From the NCBI RefSeq assembly GCF_006345805.1, contig NW_021835497.1:1-45699 (forward strand): a DNA stretch of 45,699 nucleotides, written 5' to 3'. Numbering within the stretch: the first letter of the stretch is position 1; the number at the start of each line of letters is the position of its first letter. The notes beneath the pieces were generated by a model. It was not told the origin of the DNA, made no database searches, and saw only the letters and a program-made list of their open reading frames with translations. The position numbers and the translations under genes are program-made. The stretch is from Octopus sinensis. Lineage: Eukaryota. This document shows, one piece after another, positions 1 through 45,699 of the stretch.

Positions 1-1029
1 TTCCACAAGGACATGTGTTACATCAAAAATTCTTGTTGGGGATGCAAATCCTCTCATTCACATACGACATAATGCGGCAGCAGCATAGAGTTGAAGCGTC
101 CATCTCTTTCTTCTCTCAATGTAGAATGAGGAAAATTGGATGTTGAGGTAATGTAAATAAATAAATACATATATAGAGGTGAAGATGGAGGGGCGAGAGT
201 TCGGACGAAGGGATAAAAAATGTATAAAAAGTGTAAGTATAGAATAATATAAAAATGTAGAGGATAAAGGGTTGTAAGGAGATGTAAGGGGGTATAAAAG
301 AAATATAAAGTAAAAATAGAAATAGAAATAAAAGTAAAAAAACCTGATAAAAACATGATAAAAGTGTAAAAGAATGTAAAGATAAGGGATGTATAGAGGT
401 TATGGACCAAGCATGGTGGTCAGGAGATTGATAAAATTTAGTTGTAGAATTGTCAGTACATCAACAGTTTCGTCTGGGGACTTAATGCGTTGTAAATCAG
501 AGCTGATGAGCATTTAATCCCTATGTAGTCTCTTTAATCCCCTATATCTATACCCTTTCACATTTCTAACTCAGATGTTGAACGCACACCGCCAAACTCC
601 ACTTCCCACCCTCCAATTTTCCATTTTCAGTTCCCCCCGCCCACCCCTACGTTTAACACACACCTCTAACTTTCAAACCACCTTCATCTCATGTTAAACT
701 TTACAAATTATATTTTTATCTTATTTTATTTTTATTTTATTTTTACTTTTATTTTTACTTTTATCCTACTTCCATTTATTTTATTTTTATTTTTAATTTT
801 ATTTTTACTTTTATTCTACTTCCATTTATTCTCATTTTCATTTTCATCCCTTACCTTAACTCTTATAATTTTTATAATTCTTATACTTCATTTCTAACTA
901 TTACGTTGTATTTCTTATTTTATACTGTATTTTTTATTTCTAATCTTTACCCTTACCCTCATTCTTACCCCTAACTTATCACTTTACACTTCTATTTATG
1001 TTTATTTACTTACCTATGGATCCACCTTT

Positions 1030-1520: not shown

Positions 1521-2084
1521 ATGTACTAGAAGTCCATTTAATTCAAGGAACCAGATTAAATGCTCATCAGCTCTGATTTACAACGCATTAAGTCCCCAGA
1601 CGAAACTGTTGATGTACTGACAATTCTACAACTAAATTTTATCAATCTCCTGACCACCATGCTTGGTCCATAACCTCTATACATCCCTTATCTTTACATT
1701 CTTTTACACTTTTATCATGTTTTTATCAGGTTTTTTTACTTTTATTTCTATTTCTATTTTTACTTTATATTTCTTTATACCCCCCTTACATCTCCTTACA
1801 ACCCTTTATCCTCTACATTTTTATATTATTCTATACTTACACTTTTTATACATTTTTTATCCCTCGTCCCGAACTCTTGCCCCTCCATCTTCACCTCTAT
1901 ATATGTATTTATTTATTTACATTACCTCAACATCCAATTTTCCTCATTCTACATTGAGAGAAGAAAGATGGACGCTTCAACTCTATGCTGCTGCCGCATT
2001 ATGTCGTACGTGAATGAGAGGATTGATTCCATCCCCAACCAAGAATTTTTGATGTAACACATGTCCTTGTGGAAGCTGTTGTGC

Positions 2085-4894: not shown

Positions 4895-7800
4895 GTCAGG
4901 TCACCTTCGAGTGCTACTGGTAACATGTAACCCAGTACAACCTGTTGCATGGTCGGGTCGTCGGCGACTAAATCGGCAACCCCATCAAGCTTGCTTGGTG
5001 AGGAGGGTGTTTATTGGACACCCTGCGGAATGAAAAACAAAACCCGTCAAAGGGCGGAGGACCTCTTGAGAGTCAACGGCCACCCAATAAATGTTAGCAC
5101 GGGTACGTAGAAATTCCGGGGTGGTGTCCGGCGTGCTGAAAGACCACTGGGAGTGAAGTGCCCCTCAGCTTTTGTTAAACCACGTCTCTAGGAGAAGGTC
5201 ACTCTGATATAAAACCAGATATGCAGGGAATGGCATTGAACATTTTGGGGATCTTTGGTTTGTGCTAGAGATCACGGCGCTCCCACATCCCTGAGCCTGC
5301 GACTCATATTGGCACCAGACATCTTGCTCCGGCTTGTCTCTGGATAATGTCAATAGAGTAGAGAGGGTCTATGAGGTGTTGTGCAAGCCTTATTGGACCT
5401 AAAACTCTGCACAGGCATTGCCGACCTCCTCTTTTTTTTTTTATATATATATGTATCTTATTTTTAGTATATATTTTCTTCATTTTTTTTTTTTATTCGG
5501 AAGTCCTGCGGCGATGGGAAGGTGGTGAAGCATGCAGACCTGACGGGTTGGAAGCATGTAGTCAGCGACCTGCACGTAGGCGGCCCATGCCAGATATAAA
5601 GTCGTCTCCTTGTCGCCCAAGACAGCGGTAGGATTCGGTTGCTGCATGGGTGTCTGAGCAGCTCCATTTGGAGAGGGCACTGCTCACTCGGAGATCAGGG
5701 AGGTTCTAGAAAAGGTGAACCAAAAATTGCCTGTCTTTCCATATCTGGTCAGTTTAGCGCGACTGACGGATGTCCACTCTGCGCTCGAAAAACAAAGAGT
5801 CTTTTATCTATAAAATCTGGACGGAACTTAAACATTTCATGTTGGAATATGCGTACTCTGTTGGACAACAAGAATGTTTGCAGGCCTGAAAGACGCACTG
5901 CACTTGTTGCTCGTGAGCTGAACCATTATAAAATTGATATAGCTGCACTCTCAGAGACTCGTATAGAAGGTGATGGTCAGCTTGAGGAAGTAGGAGGCAG
6001 ATACACCTTTTTTAGGAAATGAAGGCAGAAGGAGGAGCGCAGAGAGGCTGGTGTTTGTTTTGCAGTCCGATCTGATATCCTAAAGAAGTTGGAAGAGCTC
6101 CCTGTTCCTATAAATGAACGTATAATGACCCTACGGTTGCACTTGAAAGGTAAGCGGTTTGCTACTCTAATAAGTGCCTATGCACCTACTTTGACTAGCT
6201 GTGATGAAGATAAAATAATCTGTTATACCCAGCTGAGAGCCATACTTAGAAAAATCCCCAATTCTGATAAAGTCATTCTACTGGGGGATTTTAATGCGAG
6301 TGTAGGAACAGACTGGCAAACATGGAACTCTCTAGGACGTTTTGGTGTAGGAAAAATGAATAGCAATGGTCTCATGCTACTGGAGCTTTGCGAAGAACAT
6401 GGACTTTACATTACAAGTACTCATTTTGCGCACAAAAGTGATCACACAACAACATGGATGCATCCAAGGTCCAAAGTTTGGCACTTGCTGGATTATGTCA
6501 TCATCCGCAAGCGCGACATTTATGACATTTGTAATGTCAAGTCCTTGCATAGATCAGAATGCTGGACGGACCACAGTCTGGTGCGAGCAAAGTTCCGAAT
6601 GGTGATTAGGGCGAAAGAGAGAAGAGGACCAGTCAGCATTCCTCGCCGTCTAAATGTCCACGAGGTATATGACATTGTGGTTAGGAAAGAGCTTCAGACT
6701 CACTTGTCCAGCATTGAAACTGCTGCAGGATGGGAAGATTTTCGAGACCAGGTTGTTCAATGTGCAGCCGAAACACTGGGGCATGTTACTGCCAGACACA
6801 GAGACTGGTTTGATGAGAATGATGCTGAAATTCAACGACTATTAGTGATGAAGCGCCATGCCCACAGTGTTTGCTGCACAGAGAACTGTCTACTGTGCAG
6901 TGAAGTCTAGCACTTGCCCACTATAACAGTGTAAAATCACTACTGCAGCGATCTCTCAGGAAGATGCAGAACACTTGGTGGGAGGATCTTGCTCGTGATG
7001 TTCAGGCTGCTGCTGATGCAAATGACAGCAAGAAGCTTTACCATCTTATGAAGCGAGATTATGGACCTAAGAGCTCCACATCAGCTCCTTTGCTTTCCAA
7101 GGAGTCTTCCACTCAGTTTACTAAATCAACAGAAATCACAGGTCGCTGGATCGAACACTTCTCTGAACTCTTAAACCATGAGTCAGTTGTGGACGAAACA
7201 GTGATTGATACTATAAAACAAAGACCTATCATTGACTCCTTAGACTCCTCGCCATCAATACATGAAGTAATGACATCAATAAGTAAATTGAATCTTGGTA
7301 GAGCACCTGGAAAGGATGGAATTTGTGCTGAGGTCTTGCGATTTGGTGGTAATTGCATCACACAGTCCCTTCATGAACTTATTAGTGCAGTCTGGAGGGA
7401 TGGTGCAATCCCTAAGGACTGGAAGGATGCAATTATTCTTCCTCTATATAAAGGAAAAGGAGCCAGAACAATGCGTGGTAACTACAGAGGTATTGCTCTA
7501 CTATCAGCTGCTGGCAAGGTTCTGGCAAATATTCTTCTTACCTGTCTGAATAGGTGTCTCGTAAGTGATGTCCTATCTGAATCTCAATGTGGCTTCCGAT
7601 CTGGTAGAGGGACAATGGATATGATTTTCACAGCAAGACAGATGCAGGAGAAGTGCTATGAGCAGAATATGGATCTTGTCCAGGTATTCATTGATTTAAC
7701 TAAGGCCTTTGATACTGTAAATAGGGCCTTTCTATGGAAAATACTTGGCAAACTTGGATGTGCGGATCACTTTGTATCTATAATTGAATCATTTCATGAT

Positions 7801-8682
7801 GGGATGGAGGCTTGGGTCAATGTTGGTGGTGCCATGGCGGGACCCATTCCTGTAGAGAATGGTGTTAAGCAGGGTGACATCCTTGCCCCAACTCTCTTTT
7901 CTTTGTACTTTGCTGCTACTTTTACTCATGCTTTTGCTAAGGTTAGCTCTCTGGGGATATATGTCAGATATCGATCTTCTGGCCGCCTCTTTAATCTTCG
8001 CCGATTTGCTGCCAATTCAAAGGTTTCCCAGTCTATTATTCGTGACCTCCTTTATGCAGATGACTGTGTCTTAGTCACTCATACAGTGGATGACATGCAA
8101 ATACTCATGAATTGCATTTCTGCTTCTTGCAGGGCATTTGGACTCAGCATTAGCCTGGACAAGACTGTTGTAATGTTCCAGCCTGCACCAGGAAATCCAT
8201 ATATAGAACCAGCTATCTTGGTTGAAGGAACAATTCTGAAGGTTGTAGACAAGTTTATCTACCTGGGGAGCACACTCAGCCGTTCTTGCTCCCTGGATGA
8301 GGAAATATCTTTCAGGTTGCAGAGAGCAACAAATTCCTTCCGGTCTCTTCAGTCTTGTGTCTGATCCCAACATGGCATCGCAAGGAGAACAAAAGTTGCT
8401 GTGTACCGTGCTTGTGTACTGACATCGCTTCTCTACTCATGTGAGACATGGACTCTGTACAAACGTCAGATAAGGGTCCTTGAACGTTTTCATCAGAGAT
8501 GTCTCAGACACATTCTCAATGTTGGCTGGACCTCAAAAATTCCAGACACACAGATCCTGAGGACAGCTGATATATTGAGTATTGAGGCGATGGTACACAA
8601 GCACCAGTTACGTTGGACTGGACACCTTATTAGAATGGAGGATAGAAGGATTCCTAAGCAGATGCTCTATGGAGAACTGAAA
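4895..8682 (+). mobile_element. Decayed RTE-clade (BovB-like) LINE: long 5' UTR, APE endonuclease and reverse transcriptase; 3' end missing
   Basis: APE motifs LNISCWNMRTLLD, IDIAALSETR, ISAYAPT, ILLGDFNASVG, LLDYVII and TDHSLV (5827-6600). RT motifs KAPGKDG, NYRGIALLS, QCGFRSGR, FIDLTKAFD, GVKQGD, LLYADD and FIYLGS (7280-8280), then LRWTGHLIRM and QMLYGELK. In-frame stops at 6020 and 8362 plus a frameshift near 6870. Confidence 0.92.
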
Positions 8683-8773
8683 ATATGTTTGCTGAGTTGT
8701 CAAACATTTAGACCCAATTTTCTCAAAACAACTTGTCCGACAGTCCCATAGGCCACCCCTTTGAGAAGCACTG
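8683..8773 (-). mobile_element. Possible hAT-type MITE end abutting the truncated RTE
   Basis: TTTGAGAAGCACTG at 8760-8773 resembles a CAGTGCTTCTCAAA hAT terminal repeat. The partner end was not found. Confidence 0.3.
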
Positions 8774-25568: not shown

Positions 25569-28500
25569 TATAAAGTCTTCTGGCAGGGTAACATGGATGG
25601 GGTAGGGGGTGTAGGCATTCTCCTTGCGGAGAAATGGGTGGATAAGGTCATAGAGGTTGTCAGGGTTTGGGACAGAGTGCTTAAGCTCAGGTTAGTCCTA
25701 CAGAGTGGCACAGCTACGATTATCTCCGCCTATGCCCCACAAGCGGGCCTACCAAATGATCAGAAGGACCACTTTTATGATACCCTTCTACAGGCTACCT
25801 CAAAAACTAGTGGCAAGGACCTCATCTTTGTGGGTGGAGACTTTAATGGGCATGTTGGGCGGGAATCGGGTATCTTCACTGGGGTTCACGGTGGCCATGG
25901 TATTGGCTCCAGAAATGAGGAGGGAACTAGACTACTGGAATTCTGTGATGCATGTAACCTTTTAATCTGCAACACTAACTTCAGGAAGCCTGACTGCCAC
26001 CTTATAACCTATCAGTCAGGGGACTCCGCTAGCCAAATAGACTTCATCCTCACCAGACAGCGGGATGCAGGGTCGCTCTTAAATACAAAGACCCTCCCGG
26101 GTGAAGAGTGTATCCCTCAGCATAGGCTAATAATTAGTGACTTTAGGCTTGAGGCCAGAAGGACTCCAAGAAACAGACCAATCCAGAAAAGAAGGATTTG
26201 GAAGCTAAAGAACCCTTCACATGGTCAGAGATTTAGGGACATCCTCATCAAGAAATTTGATGAGAGGGAGGAGGAGCTACAGACGTCGGACATAGAAGGT
26301 AGCTGGAAATTCCTACGGGACAGCTTGCTGAGTGCCACAGACCAAGTCTGTGGATGGTGCAAAGTTCCTTCCAGACCTAGAGTTACGTGGTGGTGGAATA
26401 GTGCAGTAGACAAAGCCATTAGTTCTAAGAAACAGGCCTGGAGAGCCTGGAGGGATGGGGGTAGCAGGGAACCGTACCAAGTAGCCAAAAGGGAGGCCGG
26501 GCGGCAGGTATACATAGCCAAAGATATAGCAGAAAAGAAGAAGTTTGCCAATGTCCAGCGACGTGAGGACCAAAGAACTGAGGTATTTCGTATTGCTAGA
26601 CAGTGTGTGAGAGAAAATAGTGATGTTACAGGAGAGAAATGTGTCCGCATGGATGATGGGGCACTTGCCTTTAATGTTGGTGAAAAGAAAGAGGCTTGGA
26701 GAAGCCATTATGAAAGACTGTTGAATGTGGAGAATGAATGAGAGGAGGAGAGCCTGCCAAATGTTGACCCAGTAGAGGGACCAGCTATCCGAATAGACGG
26801 CTCCCTAGTAGATAAAGCAATTAAGGATATGAAACTGGGTAAAGCCCCCGGCCCATCATGAATCACTGCTGAGATGCTTAAAACAGCTGGTTATGTGGGC
26901 TATGGCCTAGTCACCCGCATTGTTAACCAGGTAGTTCACAATGGAGTCATACCCAATGACTGGCGTAGCAGCACCATAGTCAACTGCTACAAGGGTAAGG
27001 GTGATGCTCTAGATAGAAATAACTACAGGGGTATTAAACTGTTGGATCAGGTGATGAAGACCACAGAGAGGGTCATAACCCATCTCATTAGGGAGAGAAT
27101 TTGCTTAGATGAGATGCAGTTCGGTTTTGTGCCAGGTAGAAGCACCACTGATGCTATATTCCTGGTCTGACAACTGCAGGAGAAGTACCTAGCTAAAGAT
27201 AAACCCCTCTACATAGCTTTTGTGGACTTGGAGAAAGCCTTTGACAGGGTTCCCCGATCCCTTATCTGGTGGTCGATGCGGAAACTGTTGATTGACGAAT
27301 GGCTAATAAGGGCTGTACAGGCTATATACAGAGAGGCTGTCAGCAAGGTTAGGATTGGCAACGAATATAGTGAAGAATTCCGGGTAGAAGTAGGTGTACA
27401 TCAGGGCTCAGCCCTCAGTCCCCTTTTATTCATCATAGTCCTCCAGGCAATAACAAAGGAATTCAAAACAGGTTGCCCCTGGGAGCTCCCCTATGCTGAT
27501 GACCTGGCCCTCATAGCAGAATCACTACCGGAACTAAAAAAGACATTTCGGATGTGGAAACAAGGGTTAGAATCTAAGGGCCTTAGAGTAAATGTAGCGA
27601 AGACCAAAGTTATAGTATGCAGAAAGGCGAACTCAGCACACCCCCCATCGGGCAGGTGGCCCTGCTCGAGCTGTAGGAAAGGTGTAGGTAGAAACTCCAT
27701 AAGATGCACCCAGTGTAAGCTATGGACGCATAAGAGGTGCAGCAACATCAAAGGGAAATTAACTGATAAGATAGCTTTCATGTGCGGCAGATGCACAGGG
27801 ACAATAGACACCACAGACACTCAAAAAACAGATTCCATCACACTCCAGGGGGATAAACTAGAAGTAGTTGATAGTTTCCGCTACCTGGGTGACCAAGTTA
27901 GTAGTGGGGGTGGATGCTCAGAGAGTGTCACCACTAGAATACGAATAGCCTGGGCAAAGTTTAGAAAGCTCCTACCCCTACTGGCGACAAAGGGTCTCCT
28001 ACTCAGAGTGAAAGGTAGATTGTATGATGCATGTGTGCGAACTGCCATGCTTCACGGCAGTGAAACATGGGCCGTGACTGCAGAGGACATGCGTAGACTT
28101 GAAAGAAATGAAGCTAGCATGATCCGCTGGATGTGTAATGTCAGTGTGAATGCACGACAGAGTGTAAGCACCCTGAGAGAAATGCTAGGCATAAGAAGCA
28201 TCAGATGCGGTGTGCAAGAGCGACGCTTGCGATGGTATGGTCATGTACTGCGGATGGATGAGGAGAGATGTGTGAAGAAGTGCCACTCCCGAACAGTTGA
28301 AGGAATCAGGGGGAGAGGTAGACCCAGGAAGACATGGGATAGTCAAGCATGACCTCAGAGCGTTGGGCCTCACTGAGGCAATGGCCAAGGACCGAGACCT
28401 CTGGAGATGTGCTGTGACTACTAAGACCCGGGATGCTCCTGGCACCAGTTCCGCATACCCCCTGCCCATCCAAAGTACCTTGGATCCTGGAACATCTCGC

Positions 28501-36060: not shown

Positions 36061-37347
36061 CAAAACTAATAAAGTTTTCATTTTATTTCAGCTTTCATGT
36101 AAAAATTAGTGAATTTTGAAGAGATAAATTGTATTCGAAAGGAAGAAGAAAACAAAATCCACAGAAAAGAATATATTTAACAGAAAAAGATAATAATTCT
36201 ATATTCATAAAATGGAGAAGATTAATGAAGAAAACAAAATGTTGGCTCTCATTCCTGCCACAGTCTGTGATACAACAGCAATTTATAAGGAAACTACACC
36301 AAATCTTCCCCAAACATTACACACAAAACACAAAGAAAACAGAAGAACAGGAAGAAAAGACACAAAGAAATCTAAAGAACAGGAAAAGTCCATGTTACCA
36401 AGTTTTCTTCATATTGTGACATGTTACCGAACACTAATCAAAACAGACCACATCAATATGTTTATAGATTATGTAAAGGATAAATGTAATCACATGGACT
36501 CTCTGGGTTTAAATGGATCTCGAATTTTACGTAATATCAAACGTAAAATGCCAAGATTTCTGGAATTTGCAAAACAAAATAATGATTTTGTTCACCTAAA
36601 CCTTGATTGGTTTCAACAAAGACTCTTTGACATTTATGTCACCTGTAACCCATACAACCACAAGACCATTGAACCACCAAAAGTAACCACAAAATTTCGT
36701 CCTCTTCGGCCAGTTGTGACCAGAGAAGTAGAGATTGAGGAATCTGGTGAAGACTTAAGCAACCCAATATCCAATATTGTTGTCATACAAGGGGGTATTG
36801 TAACATATTCCCGCCACTTTATGACATATGTTGTATAACAAGAGACGGCAACAGAAACGATGTTCGTTGCTCATCTTCTGTCACTGATTTTACCAGAATC
36901 AGTGAAGACACAGTCCTCGCCACCCTGCCCTTCCGAAAAATGATTCTTATTATCAACCCTTTAAGTTTGAGAATCAAAAGAATTCAGCTAGGATTAATCT
37001 TGGTTTCTTATTTGGAACATTCTACGCTTATAGGTGTAGAAATGTTTGGTCGGACCATATACGTCATTGACTGGGAAGAGAATAGAATAAAATACGAATT
37101 CATAACGAAAGAAACCCCTTCAGATTGCTGTAGGAGCACAAAATAAACTCTTAGTATCCTTTTCCAATATTAACAGGGTTACCTGTTACAATGTGGATGG
37201 TCAGCAGTTATTTGAGGTGGATACAAATTCCCTGGACATTCCAAGCCACATCTCTGTGTACCAAAACCATTTTTATGTCCTTCAGGGACATATTATTTAT
37301 CGGATATCAGGTACAGGTGCTGTGACAACAAGAGAAATTGGCATGAA

Positions 37348-40146
37348 ATGCCGCCATATTTCTGTTGGCAAAGAAAACATTTTTGTAAACGATTATTTGA
37401 TGTCCTTCATATCATTGGAACAAATGAAGACTTTTGGCCCAGGCAGTCATATAACCCCCAGCTATGGACCCCAACATTGAACAACTATATTTATATTGAG
37501 GATTGCTACAACATTACTAATATTCTACCTATGTCTACATCTTCTATATTAATAATTTACAAAAACAAGAAAGCTAAATTATTCACTGATAACGGGGAAA
37601 TAATTAACCAAAATAATTCAGTTTTCCTTGAGCCTCCTTCTTTCTGTTGTAGAATAAACGCAAACAGATTCCTGGTATTTTATTGTGAAATGAAAGGATT
37701 TCAGTATATCACCTGTCCTGAACTAAGAAAAGGCCCTTTAATAAAGGTGCAAACTGGTTACATGAAAATATGTCATATTGTATCAAATAAGTGTCTGGCT
37801 GTGACCACCACTGAAAACAAAAGTGAGGTCCATATCCTCTTGATCAACGAAGATAAAGTTGACATTGCAGAAAGAATTTCTCTGGGACATCATAATGTCA
37901 GCATTGCTGCAACTCCAATTAATTTTGTAGTTGTAGATGGAAACGAAAATAAAATGGTATTTTATTCCACATGTGGTGAAGAACTTTTTCAAAAATACCT
38001 TCCATTCTATGGCCACCCTCATCACATTTACTCTGATAATGTTTATTTCTATGTCCTCTTCAGGAGACACTCTATTCTCAGATGTTACGATCTATATGGA
38101 CAAATGAAGTGGCAGTGGGAACTGCCTTTCCCTGTTCACACTCACATTGCTGTTTTCCAAGGAACTCTTTATGTCCCGGACTCTCAACTCAACAGGGTTC
38201 TTCTTTACAAGTATCAAGACCGGTCGTCTGCCTGCCTTTTACCCATTAAAAATCCTTACATCAGAAATCTAAATCTACGACTCAAAGAAAAGGAGAATGA
38301 CCAAAAACTTGTCATTGTCGAAATATGTAATCTGTCCAATGGACAGTTGGTGGTGTCCGACATCAACCATGATTGCTTGTTGTACATTTCTGAGGAAGGA
38401 GACATTGTGTCCAGATTATCTCTGCCGTCTACAGCCACAGATATATGTCGATGGGATTCTAATCATATAGGGGTCACATTACCCCTACAGAAACAATTAA
38501 GGGTCATTGGAAACCAATCAAAGACAGTGAGAAGTGTATCATTTAGGCAGCCTTATGTACGGATGTGTAAGATGGGTGAATGTGAAATTGTTTGTTATTG
38601 TGATAAACCATCACATTTAGACATTTTAGCAATCAATTATTATAATCAAGTCGAAGTAATTAAGACAATTAATATCCCTGTGTTTGTGAAATCATTATCA
38701 ATAGACAAGAAAACAGAAAAGCTATTAATTGTTACTAGGGGAAAAGTTTTTCAGTACAACACTAGAATAGGTGGTGGTGGTCATGGCGTTTGTCAGATGG
38801 TCCCCAGTGTTTTAATGTCCCAAGTGAAATGTCCCCTCAGTCTCCAAGGTGGATCTATTGACCAAACGTTTGTTTATCTGATAGACAGAAGCCGTATGTT
38901 TGCCATAAACGATCAGAATTTGTTGGTTAATGATCTCGTTACTAATAATCAACTTAATTATTATATCGACCTGGTGGATGTATTTTCCAGACACATTTCT
39001 CTCAGTGAAATGTTGTCTTCCACTTTATATCTACAGGACCTGACAGTTTCTGATAAAGCCAGACATATTCCTCTCCCTAAACATTTGGGAGACATAGAAC
39101 CAGCAAAGATTGAACGTTTGGTTCTTACTGAAAATAATCTGATTGCAGGATATGACTGGAAGAATGGAAACATTAAGATATTCACATTGGATGGTCACCT
39201 ATTGGATTCAATCAAAGTGAATGTTTATGATTATACTAAAATGTGTCGATGGCAGTCAAACACACTGGTCATTACTAATAGGGATCTTTATTATAATAAA
39301 TACCAACTGGTCATTACGAATAGGGATCATTTTGATGATAATAAATACCAACTGTTGACATTAAAAGTGGAATTACCATTGTCGTTGGTAATTTACAAAA
39401 CGAGAAATAAATATGAATGTGTGGCTTCTTTATCAAATAATCAACTGGTTTTGAGTGAAGAGGGAGATGGAAGACATTTGCATTTTGTTGATATTGATGA
39501 AATACATTCGAGTGTGAAGGAAATAAAGAAAATAAACATACCTGAACTATTAATGGAGAGAAACGAAGATGGAAATTATTCTGATGGAATCCTGGAAATT
39601 AAAGTTACTGATGGAGATGTCATCATTGTCTTAAACACGAGATTCATCATTTTCTTCAACAGAGGTGGTCAATATTTACATTCAGTCAGACACTACATGG
39701 AGGATTTGGGGGGTGATGATGACACGATGACAATTGATGACAGTTTTTTGTACATTCAATGTGGGTGGGAGAAATCTTTACATTTATATAAATATCGAAA
39801 CATTTTGTGTTTGACCCAGAATGGGGAATACAAGAGAATATTTTTAAATAAAAGAATTTATAAAGATAAAGTAGATTTCTTCAGTATAGACTGTAAAGGA
39901 CCAAGGTTTGTTGGAAGCCCCTGGAAGGAAGAAAGGAATGAATTGTATGTTGAAGGGTTGTTTATGGTGAATCGAGACAGCTTCCCAGTTGCTCGTTTAC
40001 AAACAGACGAATGTCCTGTTCAAGTAAAAGATTTTGATGTCTCTGAGGAAGGAAAGACAGTGTGTGTGAAAAAGCCAATAATGGAAATGTTAAAATATTC
40101 GATGAAGATGGCCAGTTGCTACGTCACAGAAATGTTGCAAGTTTAG
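37348..40146 (+). CDS. Longest intact ORF (932 aa) of the multi-propeller gene; true frame probably ~37395-40062
   Basis: 2.8 kb stop-free in AT-rich DNA, no low-complexity sequence, repeated propeller-blade patterns. Confidence 0.65.
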   Translation: MPPYFCWQRKHFCKRLFDVLHIIGTNEDFWPRQSYNPQLWTPTLNNYIYIEDCYNITNILPMSTSSILIIYKNKKAKLFTDNGEIINQNNSVFLEPPSFCCRINANRFLVFYCEMKGFQYITCPELRKGPLIKVQTGYMKICHIVSNKCLAVTTTENKSEVHILLINEDKVDIAERISLGHHNVSIAATPINFVVVDGNENKMVFYSTCGEELFQKYLPFYGHPHHIYSDNVYFYVLFRRHSILRCYDLYGQMKWQWELPFPVHTHIAVFQGTLYVPDSQLNRVLLYKYQDRSSACLLPIKNPYIRNLNLRLKEKENDQKLVIVEICNLSNGQLVVSDINHDCLLYISEEGDIVSRLSLPSTATDICRWDSNHIGVTLPLQKQLRVIGNQSKTVRSVSFRQPYVRMCKMGECEIVCYCDKPSHLDILAINYYNQVEVIKTINIPVFVKSLSIDKKTEKLLIVTRGKVFQYNTRIGGGGHGVCQMVPSVLMSQVKCPLSLQGGSIDQTFVYLIDRSRMFAINDQNLLVNDLVTNNQLNYYIDLVDVFSRHISLSEMLSSTLYLQDLTVSDKARHIPLPKHLGDIEPAKIERLVLTENNLIAGYDWKNGNIKIFTLDGHLLDSIKVNVYDYTKMCRWQSNTLVITNRDLYYNKYQLVITNRDHFDDNKYQLLTLKVELPLSLVIYKTRNKYECVASLSNNQLVLSEEGDGRHLHFVDIDEIHSSVKEIKKINIPELLMERNEDGNYSDGILEIKVTDGDVIIVLNTRFIIFFNRGGQYLHSVRHYMEDLGGDDDTMTIDDSFLYIQCGWEKSLHLYKYRNILCLTQNGEYKRIFLNKRIYKDKVDFFSIDCKGPRFVGSPWKEERNELYVEGLFMVNRDSFPVARLQTDECPVQVKDFDVSEEGKTVCVKKPIMEMLKYSMKMASCYVTEMLQV

Positions 40147-40153
40147 TTGTGGT

Positions 40154-41641
40154 GTGTGTTTTACACAAGAATCACACATAATGGCCACGGTTCCTAAAAG
40201 GAAAGAAAAATTTCAACTGAATGGAGAAGATTTGCAGACATCTCAAGTTTGGTCGAGTCTCATCCCTTATGGTGTAATATGGAGAAAAGTGGCGGGTATT
40301 TACTGGTGTGTACATAATGAATTGATTGAATGTCATTGCATAAAAATTGATGGGGACCAAGTGAACATTCTGGAATCTGTGTCATTATCAATTCTTGATT
40401 CTGGTCTTCGTTTCCCTTCCATTACATCTGAAACGAACAAGGAAATATTCAGTAATGAATTAATTAATAAATTGGAATACAGAGGAGGAGATGGAGAAGT
40501 AGGAGGAAGAAGAAGAGGTAAATCAGGTGAAATAATTGGTAAAGGTAGATTAAAGGTGAGATGTGGTAATTACATAGCGGAGATTAATAATTCAGGAATT
40601 GATGAAATATCAGTGAGGAGACTTCCATATAGGACAGCAATGGTCCCTTTTTCCATTCCTGCATTCGAGGAACCTGTTGATTATGATTGTGGGGACATTA
40701 GGGACCGGAACAGTAAACTAATTAAGTTAGATGAGAATGTGAGTGTGTTGATGTTTCGAGAAAGTGTCACATTAATCAGAACAACAACAACAACAGTGGA
40801 CATACTTCAACATGAACAACAACAACGACCAGCACTGGACATATGTCGGTGGACAGAGGAATGTTTCATTGTCGCCTTTGGGAGAGAAATGAGGGTCTTC
40901 AACAGGGATCTCCGTCGTTTAAAAACCATCAGAACTGAGAAATACTACAACAGGATTTATAAATACAACGACAATCAACTCGTGTGTGGTGGTCATTATA
41001 TTAGAGACATAACTCAAGAAGAGAGAGACAAGAAATATGAAAGAATATGGAGAAACAACAAGGATTACTATTATTGCAAAGACCGCAACATCTTTGACCC
41101 TTATTATGTGGATGTGGTTGATATCAAAGATGGGAAATGTAAAGATGAAGTGTGTCGTGGGAAGATGGGGAGATGGGAAAGGTTGGAGGGAGATGAAGGG
41201 GTGTTGGATGATGTGGGAGTCACATCTTTTGGTGATGTTGTTGTTGTGAGGAGGGAGATGGAGTCTAGATATTGGGAAGATTTGTGTTTTGTGGAATGGT
41301 TCAGGGAAAAGTCTTTGGTGAGGAGGATAAGAATAGAAGAAGGAAGGTTTTTTGGTTGGGAATATTATATTGCAAGACCTCGTCTGACCATAATTGGTGA
41401 ATGTGTTTATATAACAGATTTCAGAAACAATATTTACGAAATACCTGGACATATTGAAGAGGAAACATCTGAAGATGATGAAATCCTGGGATTAAAAGAT
41501 AATCCAAAATATTTACTCCTCAGAAAGGATGATAATGAAGTCGTTGAAGTTCTTGGTTTGGATGTTTCAGACAATTCTTTGATGGTTTTTGGAATTATTC
41601 CTGGACGTCAATCTTTTGCTTTCTTTTATTTTGACAAATAA
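40154..41641 (+). CDS. C-terminal ORF (495 aa) of the multi-propeller gene
   Basis: 1.5 kb stop-free, continues the same blade patterns (DICRW, VYITDFRNNIYEI), and ends with TAA at 41639-41641. Confidence 0.6.
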   Translation: MCFTQESHIMATVPKRKEKFQLNGEDLQTSQVWSSLIPYGVIWRKVAGIYWCVHNELIECHCIKIDGDQVNILESVSLSILDSGLRFPSITSETNKEIFSNELINKLEYRGGDGEVGGRRRGKSGEIIGKGRLKVRCGNYIAEINNSGIDEISVRRLPYRTAMVPFSIPAFEEPVDYDCGDIRDRNSKLIKLDENVSVLMFRESVTLIRTTTTTVDILQHEQQQRPALDICRWTEECFIVAFGREMRVFNRDLRRLKTIRTEKYYNRIYKYNDNQLVCGGHYIRDITQEERDKKYERIWRNNKDYYYCKDRNIFDPYYVDVVDIKDGKCKDEVCRGKMGRWERLEGDEGVLDDVGVTSFGDVVVVRREMESRYWEDLCFVEWFREKSLVRRIRIEEGRFFGWEYYIARPRLTIIGECVYITDFRNNIYEIPGHIEEETSEDDEILGLKDNPKYLLLRKDDNEVVEVLGLDVSDNSLMVFGIIPGRQSFAFFYFDK

Positions 41642-42039: not shown

Positions 42040-42160
42040 CCACCGCCGTCTCCGCCGTCGTGGTCGTCGTCGTCGTCGTCGTCTCCGCCGTCGTCGTCGT
42101 CATCATCATCATCATCATCATCACCATCATCATCGTCATCATCATCGTCGTCGTCATCAG
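42040..42160. repeat. Compound trinucleotide repeat (CGT/CAT/CCG)n
   Basis: Direct reading; produces the spurious poly-Asp and poly-Ser ORFs in the track. Confidence 0.9.

Positions 42161-44826: not shown

Positions 44827-45699
<873 letters not shown>

Follow-up and report, generated by a model that had tools for sequence, protein, structure and literature searches.

An Octopoda-restricted family of single-exon genes encoding six tandem NHL-like propeller units, with a proposed role in recognition

The stretch analyzed here, referred to as the window, comprises 45,699 nucleotides of Octopus sinensis DNA (assembly GCF_006345805.1, contig NW_021835497.1, positions 1 to 45,699 of the forward strand), and our subject is one copy of a large propeller-protein gene located in its right part. 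The gene and the parts of its product, from the N- to the C-terminus, are as follows.

36078-36092, plus strand: candidate 3′ splice acceptor (pyrimidine tract followed by CAG) ahead of the single coding exon, identified by sequence reading only.
36212-41641, plus strand: the family gene copy, a 5.4-kb coding stretch without internal stop codons.
36197-36835, 36751-37143, 37106-37477, 37216-40143 (976 codons) and 40106-41638, plus strand: five overlapping open frames of the gene copy, in 5′ to 3′ order.
36212-36364, plus strand: N-terminal K/E-rich tail, predicted to be disordered (AlphaFold2 (AF2) model of the intact close paralogue P0049; predicted local distance difference test score (pLDDT) below 50 for residues 1-62).
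36365-36646, plus strand: N-terminal helical domain of ca. 95 residues, one long helix and three shorter ones (AF2 model of P0049).
36704-37545, plus strand: propeller unit 1, the most conserved, with frameshifts at 36825, 37123 and 37395 (AF2 model of P0049, Foldseek, hhalign).
37543-38355, plus strand: propeller unit 2 (AF2, hhalign).
38353-39162, plus strand: propeller unit 3, which has a Gly/Ser-rich loop as a variable site of insertions and is followed by a short helical linker (AF2, hhalign).
39160-40082, plus strand: propeller unit 4, hypervariable, with a 48-bp in-frame tandem duplication at ca. 39291 and a frameshift at 40060 (AF2, hhalign, hmmsearch).
40080-40750, plus strand: propeller unit 5, short (ca. 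220 residues), with a frameshift at 40148 (hhalign only, match over ca. 100 columns).
40748-41641, plus strand: propeller unit 6, hypervariable, followed by the stop codon TAA at 41639-41641 (hhalign, 98.2% over 193 columns).

The coding stretch lies where the original prediction had placed it, and both a candidate splice acceptor and the favorable start context (A at −3 and G at +4 of the ATG at 36212) claimed there were recovered by sequence reading. The last open frame is closed by the TAA at 41639-41641. In tblastn searches, intact relatives were collinear with all five frames; when the window gene was read in six pieces, a conceptual protein of ca. 1,807 residues with zero internal stops was obtained. 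In DNA with a G+C content of ca. 35%, and given 70 homologues, a 976-codon open frame is far beyond chance. The product is a protein of ca. 1,800 residues that consists of a disordered tail, a helical domain of ca. 95 residues and six tandem NHL-like units and that contains neither a RING finger nor a B-box.

The coding stretch is also, as had been claimed, clear of transposable element domains and microsatellites. Tandem Repeats Finder detected only two short tandem duplications inside it, at 39264-39354 and 39614-39661, in a gene whose flanks are crowded with microsatellites. The first array has a 42-bp period and corresponds to an in-frame 48-bp insertion at 39291; this duplication (LVITNRD...NKYQ repeated) falls within a loop of unit 4, is private to the window copy and coincides with low AF2 confidence. 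Short motifs recur across the units, as the original prediction had noted: DICRW in units 3 and 6 and KMCRW in unit 4, NIKIFTLDGHLL and NVKIFDEDGQLL in units 4 and 5, and PSHISVYQNHFYVL and PHHIYSDNVYFYVL in units 1 and 2.

The window gene is one copy of a single-exon family restricted to Octopoda (Octopus vulgaris, O. sinensis, O. bimaculoides and Argonauta hians). When the longest frame was used as the query, 47 proteins were retrieved, all from the three Octopus species; a profile search brought the number to 70 and added two proteins of ca. 1,913 residues from A. hians (40% identity). The proteins retrieved in either search are unnamed, uncharacterized or hypothetical throughout. When 1.84 billion representative proteins were searched exhaustively with the profile by HMMER, only 40 were returned at E ≤1e-3, with nothing comparable outside the family, and the fragmentary matches that were looked up all came from Octopus. 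The closest relatives outside the family are molluscan RING/B-box/NHL proteins. Intact members are ca. 1,780-1,800 residues long and are encoded by uninterrupted single-exon open reading frames (ORFs) of 5,352-5,439 bp (L002 10001-15397, L003 10001-15352 and four more that were extracted), which agrees with the giant single-exon gene originally proposed.

Nine family regions were inspected, the window and eight retrieved loci (labels beginning with L). Six of the eight are located at 5.7-22.7 Mb on one 29-Mb O. vulgaris chromosome (5.70-5.76, 9.26, 9.57-9.60, 21.87-21.93 with at least three copies, and 22.66 Mb); of the others, one is on an O. sinensis and one on an O. bimaculoides chromosome. 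The 29-Mb O. vulgaris chromosome carries ca. 35 family gene models, many of them fragments. A divergent full-length member, P0071/P0123 (O. vulgaris CAI9717522, O. bimaculoides LOC106882419), scores 789 bits against the family profile; its copies, at least 90% identical, lie outside the main cluster, on large chromosomes of three Octopus species. P0071/P0123 may be the conserved founder of the family.

At the window locus itself, the NCBI model LOC118761855 (P0018, O. sinensis) predicts only 550 residues. The model is 100% identical to the window and lies within 37348-40146. From its start at an internal ATG, it runs to "...NDQKLVI", which is followed immediately by "GDGRHLHF..."; since coding sequence between these two points is skipped, the model is an artefact. 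Many other family gene models in long-read assemblies are fragmentary (550-1,300 residues), and those at the window and at the O. vulgaris locus L001 are fragmentary because of 1-bp deletions that are probably assembly errors (see below).

The repeat structure of the protein was revealed by comparing a family profile (26 sequences) with itself. Shifted alignments placed positions 529-1349 on 269-1051 with 98% probability, 200-1051 on 453-1349 with 97.5% and 438-1189 on 978-1731 with 96.6%; unit 6 was linked to units 3 and 4 in this way. It follows from these long shifted self-alignments that residues ca. 150-1783 form six tandem homologous units of ca. 220-295 residues. When units 1 to 6 were aligned by hhalign with a molluscan NHL-propeller profile, probabilities of 96.8, 96.1, 98.1, 99.3, 95.2 and 98.2%, respectively, were obtained; because the NHL profile was built from matches found by a search profile of units 1-4, the test is fully independent for units 5 and 6 only. 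Searching with the family profile by hmmsearch matched 225 columns of unit 4 to a Sepia pharaonis protein (P0088, CAE1315789; Pfam RING, B-box and NHL) with E = 2.7e-8. Other remote matches, which include bivalve proteins, were P0089 (RING/B-box/NHL), P0094 (RING/B-box) and P0090, P0093 and P0097 (NHL). All eight remote matches that cover a propeller unit and have Pfam domains carry NHL repeats or the RING/B-box found ahead of an NHL propeller, and none carries WD40 or Ldl_recept_b. Each unit is thus remotely homologous to the six-bladed NHL propeller found in molluscan TRIM-NHL-type proteins.

Structure prediction, which had been proposed as a check, gave propellers for units 1-4. Unit 1 was modeled from residues 1-443 of P0049 and units 2-4 from the window's own translation (37396-40077). 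In the P0049 model, a disordered tail (residues 1-50) and four helices (residues 52-145) precede a confident propeller of ca. 24 strands, in which 10-residue blocks have a pLDDT of mostly 86-93. The three-unit model is all-beta and contains three blocks of ca. 23-25 strands, with most of the 10-residue propeller blocks scoring 60-90. Residues 28-272 (unit 2) make up 24 strands at a block pLDDT of mostly 66-84; residues 307-512 (unit 3) form strands, with low confidence at residues 428-554; and residues 556-853 (unit 4) make up ca. 23 strands at ca. 75-90 across most of the unit. Homology accordingly supports the propeller assignment of all six units, and predicted structure that of four, in line with the chain of about six divergent NHL-like propellers that had been predicted.

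In unit 3, the Gly/Ser-rich loop varies in length through low-complexity insertions. In L001, it carries a 257-bp expansion with DGSISS-like repeats (L001 12573-12830, corresponding to window position ca. 38790), and P0008 has a similar insert. The 257-bp insertion was considered as a transposable element and rejected, since it is an expansion of this loop.

In Foldseek searches, the unit 1 model gave its best E value, 3.9e-12, with virginiamycin B lyase. Its template modelling (TM) scores were 0.70-0.71 to the Brat NHL domain and 0.59-0.61 to those of TRIM2/3, and the Thin NHL domain and six-bladed Pizza designs (Pizza6) were matched as well. With ca. 24 strands and a pLDDT of ca. 90, unit 1 superposes on solved NHL domains as a six-bladed fold. 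The three-propeller model retrieved generic multi-propeller proteins only, and a single-propeller query was needed to classify the fold. The top matches of the longer model, namely WD40 multi-propeller proteins, IFT-A, LRP2 and DDB1 at E ~1e-15, together with the failure of Pfam NHL to reach its threshold, could be taken to mean that the units are generic WD40- or YWTD-type propellers, that the NHL label is wrong and that the protein resembles scaffolds such as EML, IFT or DDB1 or receptors of the LRP type. However, these matches have TM scores ≤0.3 and root mean square deviations above 22 Å, as a consequence of multi-domain alignment, and for unit 1 alone the best TM scores come from NHL domains (0.6-0.71) and not from WD40 proteins (0.3-0.56). 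The domains of the remote matches and the 95-99% probabilities of all six units against the NHL profile also speak against it. In addition, no EGF, LDL-A, WD40 or Ldl_recept_b module was matched by Pfam in the family, and no conserved signal peptide was found. We therefore regard a WD40 or YWTD identity as very improbable.

Scanning of the five window pieces and 11 intact members against Pfam gave nothing above threshold. No RING finger and no B-box was matched in any member of this set, which agrees with the absence of both noted originally. Weak matches to propeller families were limited to DUF4934 (E = 0.01-0.06) and one sub-threshold match to the WDR90 propeller (E = 0.042). Single-sequence and profile searches of the PDB gave E values of 0.015 or worse, and the weak matches were designed propellers and the NHL domains of TRIM71, TRIM2 and Thin.

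The region 36212-36700, for which the original prediction had asked for the N-terminal domain to be identified, was resolved in part. The predicted helices of P0049 span residues 52-97, 102-122, 124-129 and 131-145, at a block pLDDT of mostly 68-85, so a helical domain of ca. 95 residues is predicted here; an identity with a Pfam family or with the TRIM coiled coil was not obtained. Pfam had no match for the domain, and alignment of the helical head by hhalign with the N-terminal halves of molluscan TRIM-like relatives gave a probability of 0.3%. Homology to the TRIM coiled coil is not supported by this comparison, although a helical domain does precede unit 1. A match to Lebercilin (E = 2.8e-4, under the Pfam cut-off) is most likely compositional and due to the K/E-rich tail.

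We next consider whether the interruptions of the window gene are real. L001 (OX597841.1:9.256-9.278 Mb) is collinear with window positions 20853-43808 at 93-97% identity and is therefore the O. vulgaris orthologue. Alignment of the window with L001 and with the intact paralogues L002 and L003 revealed five deletions in the window: at 36825 (−1, AA to A), 37123 (−2, ATAT to AT), 37395 (−1, TTTT to TTT), 40060 (−1, TT to T) and 40148 (−1, GG to G). None is common to L001 or the paralogues, and all are located in 2-4-nt base runs or an ATAT repeat. L001 in turn has ca. 10 private frame-breaking indels, nearly all of them 1-bp deletions and none shared with the window.

A sixth window deletion, at 36351, compensates for a 2-bp (AC)n difference shared by both copies. 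This length change, at 36318, shifts L001 into the frame of an ATG at 36225, a possible alternative start; the 1-bp deletion at 36351, private to the window, restores the frame of the ATG at 36212. The true start codon thus depends on whether the deletion at 36351 is real. Homology among paralogues extends ca. 1.4 kb 5′ of the ATG.

Five frame-breaking deletions within 5.4 kb, in a gene whose orthologue has ca. 10 of its own, may indicate that the window copy is a genuine, recently inactivated pseudogene and that the frameshifts are real mutations. The ratio of nonsynonymous to synonymous substitution rates (dN/dS) for the whole gene, which is ca. 1.1 (1.08) between the window and L001, points the same way, as does an indel-to-substitution ratio of ca. 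0.1, typical of neutral DNA. Truncated family copies do exist, one of them at the window end, and the only NCBI model at the locus is the 550-residue fragment. Against this, neither the window copy nor L001 contains an in-frame stop over 1,798 codons, while 6.5 nonsense changes are expected under neutrality for the 152 substitutions that separate them (P = 0.0015). A dead gene is expected to drift towards a dN/dS of 1 everywhere; the whole-gene average hides strong heterogeneity between units, with 0.19 for units 1 and 2 (P = 0.0009) and 2.0 for units 4 and 6 (P = 0.04) in the same pair. The private small indels of the window and L001 are, with one exception, deletions of 1-2 bp (one is of 5 bp), and those of the window all fall in short base runs. 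Both assemblies were built from error-prone long reads: the O. vulgaris assembly is based on Oxford Nanopore Technologies (ONT) R9.4.1 data with hybrid polishing, and the O. sinensis assembly is cited as based on Pacific Biosciences data (PMC10700109). Other copies are intact within the same ONT assembly. Taken together, private deletions in base runs, the lack of nonsense codons, the unit-wise dN/dS values and the long-read origin of the assemblies lead us to conclude that the five frameshifts are probably assembly errors and that the gene is probably intact; inactivation is the less probable explanation, though one to be taken seriously.

Selection was analyzed for each unit across nine coding sequences, as the original prediction had suggested. 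All comparisons show constraint on unit 1 (dN/dS 0.21-0.37), and most show it on unit 2 (0.16-0.68). Within the clade of young copies (window, L001, L002, L004 and L005), dN/dS is 1.5-3.4 for unit 4 and 2.4-6.8 for unit 6, values that rest on 2-11 synonymous changes per comparison; in older comparisons, it is 0.4-0.9. For units 4 and 6 pooled, omega is 2.0-3.7 (P 0.0008-0.04). Purifying selection thus acts on units 1-2, and among young copies dN/dS exceeds 1 for units 4 and 6. When the five young copies are compared over unit 4, the residues at which they differ are more frequent outside the strands of the model (60/154) than within them (24/144; P = 2e-5) and are clustered in a few loops.

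Synonymous divergence (dS) between the units of one gene pair differs up to 30-fold. Between L002 and L004, it is 0.87 for the N-terminus, 0.72 for unit 1 and 0.02 for unit 2; between L002 and L006b, it is 0.01 for unit 5 and 0.35 for unit 6. In comparisons with window positions 36212-41641, L002, L004, L005, L006, L007 and L008 all appear as unit-level mosaics, in which the synonymous divergence of neighboring units may run from ca. 0.01 to ca. 0.9 within one pair. Such contrasts identify the paralogues as mosaics that arose from gene conversion or unequal exchange. The paralogues also carry two very divergent N-terminal types (dS 0.7-1.7 between types). These patterns imply that whole propeller modules, as well as the two N-terminal types, are frequently converted or exchanged among paralogues.

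The flanks of the paralogues are homologous over several kb, to a variable extent and with no common sharp boundary, which indicates segmental duplication and not transposition. This bears on whether the ORF could be part of a transposable element or an endogenous virus, a suspicion raised by its single exon, its dozens of similar copies and its surroundings of repeat-rich DNA, since the window also contains long interspersed nuclear element (LINE) ORFs. In Pfam searches, however, no domain of a transposase, integrase, reverse transcriptase or capsid was matched in the ORF, selection on it differs by unit, and its nearest relatives are cellular TRIM-NHL-type proteins. Since, moreover, O. sinensis and O. 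vulgaris are collinear at this locus for at least 20 kb and the paralogue flanks vary, a mobile or viral origin was rejected as extremely improbable. The LINE ORF pairs both lie upstream of the propeller gene.

5639-8751, plus strand: LINE-type remnant, with an ORF pair at 6089-8364 (Exo_endo_phos_2 endonuclease ORF and RVT_1 reverse-transcriptase ORF).
25593-28352, plus strand: LINE-type remnant (Exo_endo_phos_2 ORF and RVT_1 ORF), with a weak PHD-finger match.

Near the start of the window, ORFs at 54-410 (minus strand) and 1663-2013 (plus strand) have translations (MVHNLYTSLIFTFFY...) that are nearly identical, which indicates an inverted repeat of ca. 350 bp whose arms are ca. 1.25 kb apart. 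A (CGT)n/(GTCATC)n microsatellite at 42056-42158, ca. 400 bp 3′ of the stop codon, gives rise to poly-Asp and poly-Ser pseudo-ORFs on two strands, which are not genes.

Two further features are located downstream of the propeller gene.

44827-45519, plus strand: degenerate C2H2 zinc-finger array (Pfam zf-C2H2 and zf-H2C2_2; 84-bp period in Tandem Repeats Finder), with stop codons after 45345.
45514-45698, plus strand: second family copy, 5′-truncated, beginning in the middle of unit 2 and cut by the contig end (tblastn to P0057 residues 598-648, 78% identity).

The second copy that the original prediction had placed at the window end was therefore recovered by tblastn. The zinc-finger array is joined directly to it at "...FHCDI|", and a frameshift follows at ca. 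45543; the junction looks like a rearrangement breakpoint or a chimeric pseudogene. It had further been proposed that the propeller family is embedded in, and duplicates with, a C2H2 zinc-finger cluster. What stands of this proposal is one decayed array joined to the second copy; zinc-finger arrays were found near only three of the nine family regions (10-kb flanks, with L004 counted at a greater distance). Apart from the window, these are the O. sinensis paralogue L008, with arrays 1.4-2.9 kb downstream, and L004, with arrays ca. 36-37 kb upstream; no array is present within 10 kb of L001, L002, L003, L005, L006 or L007. Co-duplication with zinc-finger genes is therefore weakly supported and not established. 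An apparent fusion of a zinc-finger protein with propellers, P0053, is a 42-kb gene model that combines a zinc-finger exon with a propeller ORF ca. 36 kb downstream and is probably an annotation artefact.

What could such a protein do? In proteins already described, one face of the NHL propeller binds RNA (as in Brat and LIN-41) or protein partners. In the octopus family, neither a conserved signal peptide nor a membrane-helix-like stretch was found, so the protein looks cytosolic. The mechanism we favor, tentatively, is that of a cytoplasmic multivalent recognition scaffold. In this model, the protein would self-associate through its helical head and dock an invariant partner with the conserved propellers 1 and 2, and the hypervariable loops of propellers 4 and 6 might bind ligands that change fast, for instance RNA or protein from viruses, transposons or other non-self sources. 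The repertoire would be renewed by duplication, gene conversion and diversifying selection, and the role may be in innate immunity or genome defence, in parallel to expanded TRIM families though without built-in E3 ligase activity. In favor of recognition are the dN/dS values of units 4 and 6, the enrichment of changes in loops, the mosaicism and the cytosolic appearance; a receptor or immune role would fit the elevated dN/dS and the variable loops.

The main functional rival is that the same architecture serves another purpose, namely that of RNA-binding regulators (Brat, LIN-41, Mei-P26) or of cytoskeletal or vesicle adaptors (TRIM2/3) in octopus neural or developmental programmes. The best structural matches do include the RNA-bound Brat NHL domain, TRIM71-class domains and TRIM2/3, units 1-2 are conserved, and the divergent P0071/P0123 has copies at least 90% identical in three Octopus species. 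However, developmental regulators are usually single-copy and conserved, while the octopus family has dozens of young copies; two units with dN/dS above 1, hypervariable loops and gene-conversion mosaics are likewise difficult to reconcile with such a role. We consider a regulator or adaptor role rather unlikely.

Overall, we assign a probability of roughly 70% to the best explanation of the locus, an Octopoda-restricted, single-exon, six-propeller family, with the proposed recognition role as its more tentative part. Several points weigh against this explanation. Pfam NHL (PF01436) did not exceed its gathering threshold in the window pieces or the 11 intact members, a sequence search of the PDB gave only E ~0.7-0.9, the mean pLDDT of the three-unit model is only 60.8, and the predicted structures cover units 1-4, with unit 5 being short. 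As to intactness, the frameshift-to-substitution ratio of ca. 0.1 also fits real neutral indels, and the NCBI model, being an artefact, offers no curated support. The dN/dS values above 1 depend on few synonymous changes, and gene conversion makes the compared pairs non-independent. The recognition role is a proposal drawn from sequences and models, and a literature search, which included the LOC identifiers, found no description of the family.

A bolder proposal, which we regard as speculative, is that octopods may have built a new class of intracellular recognition receptors from six TRIM-derived NHL propellers in one single-exon gene, with a repertoire diversified by tandem duplication, unit-by-unit gene conversion and positive selection that targets the loops of propellers 4 and 6. 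Large lineage-specific expansions are a known trait of cephalopod genomes, with protocadherins and C2H2 zinc fingers as the usual examples. The propeller family is another such expansion, one that is invisible to Pfam. Its conserved front half, two hypervariable propellers, mosaics and loop-focused change are the signature usual in immune or genetic-conflict proteins. On account of this signature, the family can be put forward as a concrete and testable candidate for a part in the innate immunity or genome defence of octopuses, both of which are poorly understood. As a practical point, the fragmentary state of many family models in long-read assemblies should be kept in mind.

Among known systems, the TRIM-NHL proteins (Brat, TRIM2, TRIM3, TRIM32/Thin, TRIM71/LIN-41 and S. 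pharaonis CAE1315789) are the closest. All six octopus units are remotely homologous to their six-bladed NHL propeller, the octopus DICRW motif parallels GICLW of the cuttlefish protein, and a helical region precedes the propellers in both. Unlike them, the octopus family has no RING and no B-box, no homology could be detected between its helical head and the TRIM coiled coil, and its chain contains six propellers and not one; it is also single-exon, octopod-restricted and highly multiplied, and its match to Pfam NHL is below threshold. The profile-profile and fold evidence places the family in the NHL superfamily, and it descends from the same propeller domain as TRIM-NHL proteins, although it scores neither as a TRIM protein in the comparisons above nor as NHL in Pfam. 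It represents an octopod-restricted new architectural variant, with six NHL propellers per chain and no E3 ligase module, that our searches did not find elsewhere.

Multi-propeller scaffolds and receptors (EML/WDR, IFT-A, DDB1 and the YWTD protein LRP2/megalin) also combine several beta-propellers in one polypeptide and were the top Foldseek matches of the three-unit model. They differ in belonging to the WD40 and YWTD superfamilies, with TM scores ≤0.3, and the octopus family has no EGF, LDL-A, signal peptide or membrane anchor. Virginiamycin B lyase and the bacterial NHL-like propellers (DUF4934 and the Pizza designs) share the six-bladed fold and provided the best unit 1 Foldseek match (E 3.9e-12) and the weak DUF4934 matches; these are, however, bacterial single-domain enzymes or designs, and their likeness to the octopus units is at the level of the fold only. 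No sign of an active site came up in the octopus units, though no search aimed at one was made.

The closest parallels in mode of evolution are vertebrate restriction factors of the TRIM5/TRIM22 type, NLRs and the variable lymphocyte receptors (VLRs) of lampreys, which are expanded, fast-evolving recognition families. Lineage-specific tandem expansion, gene conversion and dN/dS above 1 on the surface loops of a repeat scaffold are common to these families and the octopus one. The octopus fold, in contrast, consists of NHL propellers and not of SPRY domains or leucine-rich repeats (LRRs), and it is accompanied by no recognizable effector domain. If the proposed recognition role is correct, the octopod genes would represent, in an invertebrate and on a propeller fold, a counterpart of the LRR or SPRY families that evolve fast in immunity and genome defence.

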